A stretch of DNA of 64,000 nucleotides. Origin: Salpingoeca rosetta. Lineage: Eukaryota > Protista > Choanoflagellata. The notes under the pieces were generated by a model that was not told where the DNA came from, ran no database searches, and worked only from the letters and a program-made list of their open reading frames with translations. A program made the position numbers and the translations under genes. Positions 7,275 to 12,425 of this stretch are shown here, in pieces; the stretch's first letter is position 1; the number at the start of each line of letters is the position of its first letter. The stretch covers positions 82,038 through 146,037 of the forward strand of contig JAWQFM010000007.1 in assembly GCA_033442325.1 (NCBI GenBank). The letters are read 5' to 3'.

Positions 7275-9532
7275 TCAGACACTTGTCAGCTCCGCCGTGC
7301 CGTGCGAGGCGGAAGGGCGAAGCAAAATCGCAAGAATGCTTGCAAGCAACAGCACCGCAACTCCAACAACAACTGCAACAACCACGCCTCCAAGCGAGCC
7401 TGCAGCTGAACTGCTGCTGCCCGGTGGGTCGGGCGAGATGCGCCGCTCATCGTTTACGGCGGCCAGGGCGATGGGTAATCCACTGCCACCAGCAGTCGCG
7501 TTGGTGGCTGATGTTGATGTTGATGTTGATGTCGATGTCGTGGTGGCTGTGCTGTTCCCTTCAGTCGAGGGTGGCAGCGACGGCAGCGTGAGCGCCTCTT
7601 CACCTGATCCACTGCCGCTAAACGTCGCAGACGCTGTTGTTGTTGTTGTTGTTGCCGTGGTTGTAGCCGTGGTGGTGGTTGTCAGTGTCACTTCGCCCGA
7701 GCCACTGCCGCTCGATGTGGTGCTGGTTGTCACTGTTGTGGAAGTTGAGATGGTAAACTCTCCAGAGCCACTCCCACTCATGCTCGTGCTGCTGGTTGTT
7801 GTTGTTGGAGAGGGTGTAGTTGTATCTTCACGGCTGCGACAAATCGCCCACGAGCATAGGGGTGTGCGCCTGCACTCGGCTTCGCTCTGGATGGCAGGAC
7901 AGTCGTACGCCACCTCGCACGTGTCCCCATTGAGAATGCAGCCAGGCCGATTCTCGCACGCAATTGGCAGAGGTGCCTTGCACGGGCGCTGGAAGCGAAC
8001 ACAGTTGCCTGCAAGCATGCAATTCGGATTCTGCACACACAGTTGTGGGACAACAATCAAGCTGCACTCGTCTGGAGCTATCAAAGATGACGTGGTGGTG
8101 GGAAGCGTCACAGTGCCAGACCCACTTCCGCCCGTGCTGGTCGTGGTAGCTGTTGTGATGGTCGTAGTGGGCGTTGTGGTGGTCGAAGTCGTTGAGGTGA
8201 CTTCCATCATGCTGGTGGTCGTGGTTGTGGTGGTGGCGGTCGTGGACATGGTAAACTCGCCAGACGCACTCTCACTGGACGTGCTTGTGCTGGCAGTGGT
8301 TGTGGTGGTTGTGGTGGTGGTGGACGTGGACGTGGTAAACTCGCCAGACGCACTCTCACTGGACGTGCTTGTGGATGTTGTGGCAGTCGTGGTGGTGGTT
8401 GTGGCTGTGGTTGCTGTGCTGGTGGTGGTTGAGGTCACTTCCAACATGCTTGTCGTGGTGGTGTTCGTCGTGCCTGTTGTCTCAATTACCTCAGTTGTGG
8501 TGGTTGATGCTGTTGTCTCAGTTGATGCGGACGTCGTCGTCGTCGTTGCTGTTGTTGTTGTTGCTGTTGTTGTTGTTGTTGTTGTTGTTGTCGTTGTCTC
8601 GGTTGATGATGATGATGGTGATGATGACGATGATGATGATGATGATGATGATGATGATGATGATGATGATGATGATGATGATGATGATGATGATGATGAT
8701 GTTGTTGTTGTTGTTGTTGTTGTTGTTGTTGTTGTCGTCGTCGTCTCGGTTGATGATGATGACGACGATGATGATGACAACGACGACGACGATGTTGTTG
8801 TTGTTGTTGTCGTCGTCGTCGTCGTCGTCGTCGTCGTTGTTGTTGTTGTTGTTGTTGTTGTTGTTGTTGTTGTTGTTGTTGTTGTTGTTGTTGTTGTTGT
8901 TGTTGTTGTTGTTGTTGTTGTTTCTGTTTCAGTTGTTGTTGTTGTTGTTGTTGTTGTTGTCTCAGCCGTCGTGAATGTTGTCTCAGCCATCATTGTTGTA
9001 GTAGTAGTAGTAGTTGTTGTTGTTGTTGTTGTCGTCGTTGTTGTTGTTGCCTCACGCGGCACGCATGCGCGCCGCCAAGAGCATAGGTTGGTTATCCTAC
9101 ATGTCCGCTCATCCTGCCGAAGAGACAGCCCGCAAGGAGAAACGACGCTTCTGGTGAGCACCGCTTCAATCGCTTCAATACACAGAGACAGGCAGGTATC
9201 ATCCAATCAACACGCCCCTGCCCAAGGTATGGATGTGCACAGCGCACAGAGTCAAGTACGCATGGGAGCCAACTTCTCACCTCCACTGCAGCGCAGTCGT
9301 AGTCAACCTCACAACGATCACCGTTGAGGCGGCAGCCAGGTGAAAGCGCACAGATGACGGGGATTGGAGAATTGCACGAGCGCGGCGATACGGTGCAGAA
9401 GAATGTGGCCTGGCAGTCTGGATCACGCTCGCACTGCTGGACGCTCCTGTGCTGAGCACATTGTGCGTGGTTGGCGTGTGCGTGGGCTAGAACGCCCAAC
9501 AGCCCAACTGCAAGCAGCACGAAGCGGCTCAT
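7275..9532 (-). CDS. Single-pass surface glycoprotein A: signal peptide, two copies of a Cys-rich module, long Thr/Ser mucin stalk, several SGSG motifs, TM helix, short tail ending ELTSV
   Basis: Exon 1 9532-9281 (MSRFVLLAVGLLGVLAHAHA plus Cys-rich region). Exon 2 9113-7275 follows a CAG acceptor. TM helix GGVVVAVVVGVAVLLLASILAILL. Confidence 0.85.
8532..9050. repeat. Coding trinucleotide tracts, (GTT)n and (GAT)n on the plus strand, encoding poly-Thr and poly-Ser on the minus strand
   Basis: Long visible GTT, GTC and GAT runs inside exon 2 of glycoprotein A. Confidence 0.9.
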
Positions 9533-11333
9533 AGCGGTTATTGATGCGGTGCAAAGTGGGGAGAGAACAGAAGAACTAGCCAGGGAGCAGAGATGTGGAG
9601 TGGGGGTTCCTGTCGGCAAACCAAGATGTGGTAAAGCGAAGTCGGATAGTGTGCTCTTTGCTGGGTGATGATAGCCGTCGTCTTTCTGGCACTTGCAGGG
9701 AGTCGGTTGGACGGACGGTATGAAGACGGGTCAACAACTGGTGACGCGGTGTGCGGGAAATGCAAGATGAGAAATGCAGGATGGAAGGATGGAGGGTGTT
9801 GTGAGCCAACGGTCGCACACTGCGCAGCCAAGGCGTTGCAGGAGAGGGCGAAAGGCACAGCCGAAGGAAGATGCAGCCAGAGGCACGCGAAATAGTGCGC
9901 GCGCACCCGCGTGCGTGCGTGCTTGTGCGATGCAGTGCGGCAGTGCGCATGCGAGTGTTCATGTGCTTGCGTGCGAGTGTTCGCGTGTTTGTCTGTGTGT
10001 GCGAGTGTGCGAGGGCGTGCACATGCTTGCTTCTGCGCTACTGCACAGCACACCACGCGTGCGCACGCCTTTGCGCACGTCTAAACGCGGGCGTGGCTGG
10101 CCATCACCATCACCACTGTCGAGATGCCACTGTGTCTGAGCTGGAACAGCCTCACCCATACATGCATGTGGGGCGACCACGTGAAAACCATCCAGCACCC
10201 GCGAGTCTCGGAACAGCAGCAGCAACATCAATCAGGTCTGTCATCGCGGGCGAACGCCTGGAAGTGTGCAAGCAACCGTGGTCGGGTGGGGCGCAGCGGG
10301 CAAAGGAAAGGGCTGTCACAGCTGTGCGCAGTGGGTTCACATGTTGTGTGACATGGTGTAAACGCAAGAATAAGTGTTCTTGATAATCTTCAATCAGCAT
10401 GCGACCGTGCAGCAACACACAACCTACTCAGCTCGTGCTCCAATCAATTGCAACGCACCGCCATCATCACTGCGGCCATCCATCTTGGTCGTCATTGTCA
10501 TCATTGTCATCATTCAGCAGCCGCGAAATTCAAAACGCACCGTTACTTTTGCAAGCGAAGCAGGCGGTTGATTGATGTATTTGACACAACTTACAATGCA
10601 TCGTGCCGCCCTCTCTCACTCGCTCGCCCGTTCGAGGGTTGGTGAGCAGCTGCAACAACGAGCAAGAGCTGGGCCATCTATGAATAGATGACGATAGACA
10701 ATGGCATCTGCAGGCAGGCAGGAAGCGAGTCGAAGGTGCGTGAGCGAGTGTTTGCATGCGCTCATGATTGCGATTGCGTGAGTGTTGTTTCCGCACTGCA
10801 GCCACCCATGCAAGCAGAGCACTGCCGCAGCACCTGCGCCCTGCAAAGCCAACAAACAACCTTCTCAAGCGTTTGTCATGTTCATGGATCAATCATCATA
10901 GACATTCACTCATAGCACCCATCCCTATCTGGCGAGCTAGGTTCACTGCAACCCACCCACCCTTTAGGTTTCTCACCATCTCCATTGTTTCTATTGATTA
11001 TGCCTCTCCCATCCCAACTACACGGCCAGGCCGAACGCACCCTGTTCGTGATTGGACGGCAAACACCCATACCCATGCCACACCATCAGCATCAGAACAC
11101 CAAAGTACCAGAGCACGAGCGCATCAGAGCATCAGTACCGCGCGCGATGAACTCAGGATGTGAGCGAGCAAGTGGCGGCGGCTTCGCCAATGTGTCCATT
11201 TTTATCGTCATCTAGCGACCGCATCGACCACACACAATACAGCGCGTGGACGTTGCTTTGTGTGAGCCCCTGACACCATCATATCCCGATATCTGCATCA
11301 CACGTGAGCCGAGACAAGAAGACAAGACCCGAC

Positions 11334-12425
11334 ATGACCTGCCAGGTGCTGCTTCTGTTTGGCATTGGCCTTGCCCTGACGCGGCTGCCTGCGGCTTTCG
11401 CCCAGTGTGAAGACCACGTGAGTCCGCGACTGTGTGCTGCAGACCCGGAATGCGAGGTGTCTGGCACGTGCTCTGCTGTGAGGCAGCTGTGCGCGGCGCC
11501 ACTCGCCGTCCCTTGCAGCGCCCGTCCAGGCTGTATCATCAACGACGACGGACAGTGCGTGAATGAATTTGAATGCTCCACCCATGATGTAAGTACACAA
11601 GCTGGTTCTGTGCGCGAGTATGCGCTTGGGGGAAGGGACTGCGAATGCCATGAAAATGTACATCATCGCCTGCTCTGTTTGCGTTGAACACGAACGCGCA
11701 CGCGCACGCATTGTATTGCTTTTGTATTGGTTCTCTCTCCCTTCCTACATACATACACACACGCACACGCGCGCCCTCACTCACACGTCTGCCTGTCTTC
11801 ACCCGCGTCGCTGTGTATGCGTGAGCAGGACCAGCTGTCGTGCCGGCGAACGCCGCTGTGTCTGTGGTTTTTCACGTGCGTGCCGCGCGAGGGTGGAGAT
11901 ACCACAAGCACCACCGAGGCAGAGCCGACAACAGCAGAGCCGACAACAGCAGCGACGACAACGACGACCTCGGAGACGACAGCGTCCACCACCACGACAT
12001 TGGCTGAGAGCTCAACGATGCACTCTTCCACGCACGAAGCAACAACCACCAGCACCACGGCTACGGAAACCACGACTGAAGGCGACGAGAGCGGGTCTGG
12101 AGAGGCGACACTTGAACCAACTATTCCCTCCTCATCCTCATCAACACCATCCACCGGTAACACGACGAACACCACCACTGCCGGCAACAGCAGCAGCACA
12201 ACGGCGTTCATCAACCTTGGCACGCTCTTCCCAGCCGCTGCTGGTGCTGAGGGGAGTGCCACCGTGAACACGGCCTCGGAGGCTGCTTCTGGCCACGCCG
12301 CCATGAGCGGAAACGTGGTGGTGGCCGTTGCCATTGGACTCGCTGCGCTTGTCATTGCTGGCCTCCTCACCTACTTCCTCCGGCGCTCATCGCAGCCGGA
12401 GGCACAGGCCGGCGAGGACGTGTGA
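11334..12425 (+). CDS. Single-pass surface glycoprotein B, paralog of A: signal peptide, one Cys-rich module, Thr-rich stalk with EGDESGSGE, TM helix, tail ending AGEDV
   Basis: Exons 11334-11588 (donor gtaagt) and 11829-12425. Cys spacing matches A and the intron sits at the same position. CRRTPLC-x-W and CVPRE are shared with A. Confidence 0.85.

Follow-up and report, generated by a model that had tools for sequence, protein, structure and literature searches.

Two divergent membrane mucin-like genes of Salpingoeca rosetta as candidate chondroitin proteoglycan cores

Introduction

In thrombomodulin, a type I 'part-time' proteoglycan, folded Cys-rich modules stand on an O-glycosylated Ser/Thr stalk, and chondroitin is attached near the membrane, within an acidic Ser-Gly-Ser-Gly-Glu sequence. 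The chondroitin proteoglycans (CPGs) of invertebrates such as C. elegans are cores confined to narrow lineages, with acidic Ser-Gly sites in disordered regions and with chondroitin shown by mass spectrometry. Syndecans combine a signal peptide, an unstructured ectodomain with Ser-Gly near acidic residues, one transmembrane (TM) segment and a short tail with a hydrophobic end, and MUC1-type mucins a long repetitive Thr/Ser-rich ectodomain, a single TM segment and a short tail. Small four-Cys helix-plus-hairpin modules are found at the cell surface in protist surface antigens. Traits of each of these systems recur in the products of two genes, A and B, that lie at positions 7275-12425 of a 64,000-nucleotide stretch of the genome of the choanoflagellate Salpingoeca rosetta (the window). 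The window DNA is identical to GL832997.1 of GCA_000188695.1.

The likeness to each of these systems has its limits. Unlike thrombomodulin, A and B carry a head that is neither EGF nor lectin-like and is without a known fold; there is no homology, and chondroitin attachment in A and B is putative. Lineage restriction and acidic Ser-Gly sites are shared with the CPGs of C. elegans, whereas A and B are known from sequence logic alone. Unlike MUC1-type mucins, they showed none of the metazoan mucin modules, SEA and EGF included, in a Pfam scan, and their head is an orphan.

S. rosetta produces chondroitin in unsulfated and 6-sulfated forms, and reportedly no heparan sulfate; the chondroitinase EroS degrades the chondroitin and triggers mating, and the modification of proteoglycans was proposed by the authors of that work as the mating cue (10.1101/139022). 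The same paper bears out the biology stated in an earlier note on this DNA. That note knew of no core protein, and none is named in any paper that we found; the identifiers PTSG_11305, PTSG_11306, PTSG_11307 and PTSG_06044 were not found in the paper texts.

Two paralogous genes with a type I membrane mucin-like design

Genes A and B are divergent, and 1.8 kb separates their start codons. Their parts are as follows.

9532-7275, minus strand: gene A, 2 exons, 696 amino acids by the present model (open reading frame list, DNA and translations)
9281..9532, minus strand: exon 1 of gene A, 84 codons, with the start codon, a signal-peptide-like segment (~9473-9532) and Cys1-Cys9 of head 1 (9281-9460)
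9114..9280, minus strand: intron of gene A, GT..AG borders, phase 0, after Cys9 of head 1
7275..9113, minus strand: exon 2 of gene A, 612 codons plus stop, with the end of head 1, stalk 1, head 2, stalk 2, TM helix and tail
8076..9050, minus strand: stalk 1 of A, 325 residues, of which 190 Thr and 73 Ser, no Lys or Arg
8213-8405, minus strand: 84-bp tandem repeat of A, enclosing both ESASGEF units
7839..8066, minus strand: head 2 of A, a second complete 12-Cys domain, no intron
7596..7778, minus strand: core of stalk 2 of A, three SGSGSGE units
7320..7391, minus strand: TM helix of A (hydropathy)
7275..7319, minus strand: cytoplasmic tail of A, 14 residues ending LTSV, plus stop codon
9533..11333, no strand: intergenic region between the start codons; in the NCBI model it includes a short coding exon at the 5' end of gene A
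11334-12425, plus strand: gene B, 2 exons, 283 amino acids
11334..11588, plus strand: exon 1 of gene B, 85 codons, with a signal-peptide-like segment (11334-11402) and Cys1-Cys9 of the head (11406-11588)
11589..11828, plus strand: intron of gene B, phase 0, positioned as in gene A
11829..12425, plus strand: exon 2 of gene B, 198 codons plus stop, with the end of the head (11829-11891), an acidic Thr/Ser stalk, the TM helix (12309-12380) and the tail (12381-12425)

Both proteins share one layout, in which a hydrophobic N-terminus is followed by a 12-Cys head, an acidic Thr/Ser stalk that lacks Lys, a single TM helix and a tail of 14 residues; the tail of B ends in GEDV. The order in A is head-stalk-head-stalk-TM, with the second head mid-protein and intronless. 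Judged by eye, the N-termini of A and B are signal-peptide-like with A-x-A cleavage sites, and hydropathy gives a single TM segment in each, so that both have the signal peptide and one TM segment of a type I protein (hydropathy and inspection). The anatomy drawn in the earlier note, with a signal-like start, Cys-rich head, Thr/Ser stalk, one TM segment and short tail, is thus upheld, but A has two heads, not one. The description of the genes as head-to-head paralogs also stands: identity between the heads is 35-43%, both genes have a phase-0 intron at the same point, and the proteins are colinear from SGSGE to the TM helix.

Thr makes up 35% and Ser 17% of A, and 18% and 11% of B, respectively. 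Composition, tandem repeats and the TM segment together give the long repetitive Ser/Thr-rich ectodomain and membrane anchor of a membrane mucin. The Pfam scan of the exon products found no SEA, VWD or EGF module and no family at its cut-off. These features show that A and B are two real-looking paralogous genes of type I membrane mucin-like design. Similarity searches of the pair were made exon by exon, and spliced B entered them only as the database protein PTSG_11306.

The design had also been called syndecan-like, which fits as a resemblance of layout but not as kinship. The A and B tails of 14 residues have no C1/V/C2 layout and no EFYA ending, and the folded 12-Cys head and the very long Thr-rich mucin stalk are absent from syndecans. 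When the products of the four exons were all scanned against Pfam with E values up to 10, Syndecan (PF01034) had no match. Because of this lack of a match and of the tail layout, we reject syndecan homology.

The tails had further been assigned to PDZ ligand class I (LTSV) and class III (GEDV). They do match the class patterns formally (x-[S/T]-x-hydrophobic and [D/E]-x-hydrophobic). However, position -2 varies freely among eight family tails (T, E, D, N, Q, D, Q and R), the last residue being Val in six, Ile in one and Leu in one. A specific PDZ class is not supported, since only the terminal aliphatic residue is kept over the eight family members. The conserved terminal Val could equally act as an endoplasmic reticulum export signal of type I membrane proteins.

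Ser-Gly clusters are selected, positioned and rare

All the Ser-Gly motifs and the LTSV and GEDV tails quoted in the earlier note are present where it placed them. The clusters that matter here are listed below.

7755-7778, minus strand: SGSGSGEF, stalk 2 of A
7689-7712, minus strand: SGSGSGEV, stalk 2 of A
7596-7619, minus strand: SGSGSGEE, stalk 2 of A, the third unit
8112-8132, minus strand: GGSGSGT, stalk 1 of A
8337-8357 and 8253-8273, minus strand: ESASGEF, two copies, stalk 1 of A
12078..12104, plus strand: EGDESGSGE, stalk of B, equivalent in position to the third unit of A

Stalk 2 of A holds 10 SG dipeptides where shuffling predicts 2.9 (p 5e-5), and its six overlapping SGSG were reached in 0 of 20,000 shuffles. 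The lone cluster of B, taken by itself, is weakly non-random (p 0.02, shuffling). The Ser-Gly clusters exceed chance for A, and for A and B as a pair. Between any two of the three SGSGSGE units of A, 3-6 of the 7 codons differ, with every change synonymous, and by tandem-repeat analysis the three units are not a recent DNA repeat. Such a pattern of purely synonymous differences is what one expects from purifying selection on the peptide. When the C-terminal regions of the two proteins are aligned by BLASTP, the match opens exactly at SGSGE and continues in colinear order as far as the TM helix (37% identity over 101 residues, E 0.001), and the distance from motif to TM helix is ~70 residues in both proteins. 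The clusters are therefore under selection, conserved between A and B and, as described below, recurrent in the gene family.

DNA strings that code for SGSGSGE are rare, with 8 in a full count of the 55-Mb genome: three in gene A, two in a Thr-rich mucin on C36, two in short frames and one in a long intracellular-looking frame. The C36 gene (C36:489884-493195; L048:2385-3503 and 4464-5696, plus strand) encodes a very Thr-rich mucin with a repeated unit ~2.2 kb apart and is interrupted by assembly gaps. Its unit ends in SGSGSGE-LENSS, and it also contains WSGSGG-VEVTLD, which resembles SGSGSGE-VTLT of A. The long frame lies on C16 near 180.7 kb (L040, plus strand), with its one SGSGSGE in an acidic His-rich stretch. 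This frame is probably intracellular, hence no candidate for glycosaminoglycan (GAG) attachment, and its C-terminal part looks ryanodine-receptor-repeat-like by eye.

Two further members of the A/B family carry related clusters. A gene on C7 near 270 kb (L026:722-1159, minus strand) encodes a head, a Thr stalk, the clusters DMGSGSGEP and DSDGSGGSDG, a TM segment and a tail ending in QDSV, and may be the cleanest candidate of the family. Another on C31 near 410 kb (L031:47-649 and 1855-2373, both plus strand) has DGSGSGTG and DGSGSGSG at its N-terminus, several heads, a TM segment and a tail ending in DNAV. The clusters of these paralogs occupy a matching position in the stalk.

What the clusters do can be read in more than one way. 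A serious, if somewhat doubtful, possibility is that A and B are membrane mucins that bear no GAG. The clusters would then be flexible unglycosylated hinges in a stiff Thr-rich rod, sites of short O-glycans, or sheddase or processing sites that precede a short hydrophobic patch (EFTI, EVTL, EATLEP). The Thr content of both proteins is typical of mucin domains, and a conserved hydrophobic stretch often follows the motif. A similar unit (SGSGG-VEVTLD, SGSGSGE-LE) recurs in the unrelated C36 mucin, which suggests a structural or processing punctuation common to mucins. However, a hinge needs no exact heptapeptide, yet SGSGSGE has been kept through near-saturated synonymous change, and Asp/Glu beside GSGSG recurs in paralogs.

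Phosphorylation offers another, very unlikely explanation. SGSGSGE, ESASGEF and ESGSGE each contain S-G-E, and S-x-E is the site rule of the Golgi casein kinase Fam20C; a phosphoserine at this position could prime upstream serines, and the product would be a charged phospho-mucin rather than a proteoglycan. Against this, paralog clusters such as DGSGSGTG have no Glu, and the genome's one Fam20C-like match scores poorly (18 bits, E 0.03) and is judged spurious because it lies antisense to a phosphoglycerate mutase gene.

An orphan 12-Cys head defines a family of surface proteins

Across nine aligned domain copies the head has 12 invariant Cys and one Trp, arranged as three four-Cys modules. Head 1 and head 2 of A and the head of B all bear this signature, and a profile search of the genome returned them at E 1e-21 to 1e-20. 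With a profile built from seven copies, at least 19 head copies were found in the S. rosetta genome, among which the query copies may be included. The phase-0 intron a few residues past Cys9 is present in head 1 of A, in B and in genes on C26, C15 and C36 and at C7:270k, and is absent from head 2 of A.

When 1.84 billion representative proteins were searched with the head profile, only 12 matched. Among these 12, five of the six best and every one below 1e-6 are S. rosetta proteins; the strong S. rosetta matches are PTSG_11306, PTSG_06044, PTSG_12389, PTSG_06042 and a protein named 'mantle protein 9'. AlphaFold (AF2), run on the nine-copy alignment, predicts a confident small domain (pLDDT 83.5) of three helix-plus-hairpin modules.

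Comparisons with known domains gave little. No exon or head copy had anything above the Pfam cut-off. Foldseek against the PDB gave E above 1 for both head models, and a wide VIA fold search gave a best Z of only 3.1. In the structure atlas TM scores were below 0.5 save for one short row at 0.51, and a feature-based search gave nothing. A word-index protein search with head 2 of A alone found no candidate sharing words, and one with residues 340-612 of exon 2 of A was dominated by low-complexity candidates. The best hit both of the VIA search (Z 3.1 over 42 residues) and of a sequence profile search of the PDB (E 0.2) was the C-terminal domain of a trypanosome variant surface glycoprotein (VSG, 2jwg); Paramecium_SA was matched at E 0.075 in 2 of 9 copies, and both resemblances are below significance. 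The likeness to protist surface antigens is thus a lead only. We regard the head as an orphan surface module that is restricted to this lineage and strongly detectable only in S. rosetta, and these results show a new family of surface mucins, specific to S. rosetta, with a head-stalk-TM layout.

The head may itself be the functional part, as a lineage-specific adhesion, matrix-binding or receptor module, with the stalk a mere spacer and the clusters functionless. It is the only part conserved across the family, and it also stands at the N-terminus of large extracellular proteins with Kunitz/tyrosinase-like regions (by eye). We consider this explanation unlikely, because it leaves the amino-acid-level conservation and the positional equivalence of the clusters unexplained. 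It is also compatible with a proteoglycan reading rather than opposed to it.

The large proteins that begin with the 12-Cys head are PTSG_12389, 'mantle protein 9' and PTSG_06042. By eye, PTSG_12389 and 'mantle protein 9' appear to carry Kunitz and tyrosinase-like regions, and the database names for such proteins are 'BPTI/Kunitz inhibitor domain-containing protein' and 'mantle protein 9'. 'Mantle protein 9' has GSGSGSS directly before its TM segment. Two near-identical family genes on C7, near 322 kb (L033) and 276 kb (L035), encode a Pro/Thr-rich stalk of short repeated units with TSGDGRG ahead of the TM segment, and their tails end in VQTV and DDNV.

Acceptor rules and the glycosylation machinery

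XT1 requires Gly or Ala after the acceptor Ser and prefers acidic surroundings, and is otherwise lax (PMC5992326). The mapped human chondroitin sulfate sites all lie in disordered or low-complexity regions, with acidic residues mostly upstream, and candidate serines were ranked GSG > SG during site assignment in that study (PMC10424144). The acidic residues around a thrombomodulin-type site control chondroitin polymerisation (cited in PMC10424144). The Ser-Gly clusters had been taken for xylosylation sites, and they agree with these published acceptor rules (PMC5992326, PMC10424144): both A and B have Ser-Gly in an acidic, disordered, extracellular stretch, as expected of a proteoglycan core. 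The site of B and those of paralogs fit the rules fully, with Asp/Glu upstream, and only B and some paralogs have this classic upstream arrangement.

The genome also encodes plausible enzymes. A GT14 gene of many small exons lies at C10 ~1334900-1337700 on the minus strand (L046:2941-5705). Four colinear exons of it have human xylosyltransferase 1 as their best match, to residues 117-153, 160-190, 203-222 and 225-255, with a best E of 2.5e-6; XT1 scores above C2GnT, and Pfam Branch is matched. At its default threshold Branch had no match in the genome, and the C10 gene emerged with a relaxed threshold and exon reading. CHGN, at two loci, and GT43 genes are above their Pfam cut-offs. On these matches, an XT1-like gene and predicted chondroitin synthesis genes coexist in the genome. 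No XYLT1 entry was found in the eLife supplements.

Xylo_C has been called a hallmark of GAG-initiating xylosyltransferases (PMC5992326). A run of N, marking an assembly gap, lies just downstream of the C10 gene. Xylo_C may be divergent, may lie inside this gap or may be truly absent from the genome, and in the last case the animal acceptor rules may not transfer to the S. rosetta enzyme.

Candidate cores for the chondroitin cut by EroS

The two proteins each hold a small disulfide-rich head on a long acidic, heavily O-glycosylatable Thr/Ser stalk, followed by the TM helix and the short tail. The Ser-Gly clusters with nearby Asp/Glu that punctuate the stalks could serve as acceptor sites for the XT1-like xylosyltransferase, and the xylose could then be extended by linker enzymes and the chondroitin synthase homologs. 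A, with up to six or seven sites, and B, with one, would be cell-surface mucin-proteoglycan hybrids on which bacterial chondroitinases such as EroS might act. From the motifs and the enzyme matches, we regard xylosylation of the clusters and their extension to chondroitin as a tentative but real possibility. The need of the organism for acceptor sites somewhere, given that it makes chondroitin (10.1101/139022) and has an XT1-like gene, speaks for it and against mucins that bear no GAG.

Several points weigh against chondroitin on A and B. The attachment is a prediction from sequence. In the three main units of A the acidic residue is downstream, where the published preference is for positions -2 to -4, which makes A the looser fit, and the exon-by-exon genome search, which can miss parts of genes, found no match to Xylo_C. 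Acidic residues mostly after the serines of A and the undetected Xylo_C both speak for mucins free of GAG. The serines could also be shielded by dense O-glycans on Thr residues nearby. For gene A the 5' end is disputed, at 9532 here and at 10483 in the NCBI model. Finally, since other genes on C7, C31 and C36 have similar clusters, A and B need not be the relevant cores.

The step to EroS is harder to take. It seems improbable, as a complete account, that family members including A and B are the chondroitin-bearing proteoglycans of the cell surface and that S. rosetta senses their trimming by EroS, a Vibrio chondroitinase, as the mating and swarming cue, and we would likewise think it quite unlikely that A and B in particular matter for EroS sensing. 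They are testable candidates, and not the only ones, for the proteoglycans that EroS cuts. If the whole account were true, these family members would be the first proteoglycan cores known from outside animals and would fill the receptor-side gap in the EroS pathway. If the clusters carry chondroitin, cores would exist outside animals on a lineage-specific scaffold, and the glycan machinery would be older than any animal core protein. If they do not, A and B still belong to a class of surface mucins of choanoflagellates that is new and abundant and is marked by an orphan Cys-rich domain. The outcome is a short, reasoned list of candidates that belong to one gene family and have a defined motif with evidence of selection on it, and these features make the core-protein question approachable by the gene editing already used in S. 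rosetta.

Gene models and neighbouring sequence

The model of gene B equals the database protein PTSG_11306 letter for letter, and its splice is confirmed by this identity. In gene A, the donor GAG|GTGAGA directly follows codon 84. In the NCBI model, gene A encodes 750 amino acids and starts at 10483, which puts 54 residues ahead of the signal-like segment (9533-9681 and a short 5' exon). For this 5' part, GT..AG pairing gives 1 one-intron and 17 two-intron solutions that fit the length. Because the paralogs all start at the hydrophobic segment, we adopted the ATG at 9532, and the NCBI extension is likely a longest-ORF (open reading frame) artefact in the 5' untranslated region. Region 9533-11333 presumably holds a shared divergent promoter and the 5' untranslated regions of both genes. 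No Rfam family matched in window 7000-12700.

Microsatellites of (AC)n and (TG)n flank both genes, at window 7200-7258 and 12436-12491, and also fill both introns; they create spurious long reading frames of Cys-Val or His-Thr on several strands. Less than 200 bp past the stop codon of gene B begins an ankyrin-repeat gene, at window 12605-14426 on the plus strand, for which the NCBI record gives 199 amino acids.

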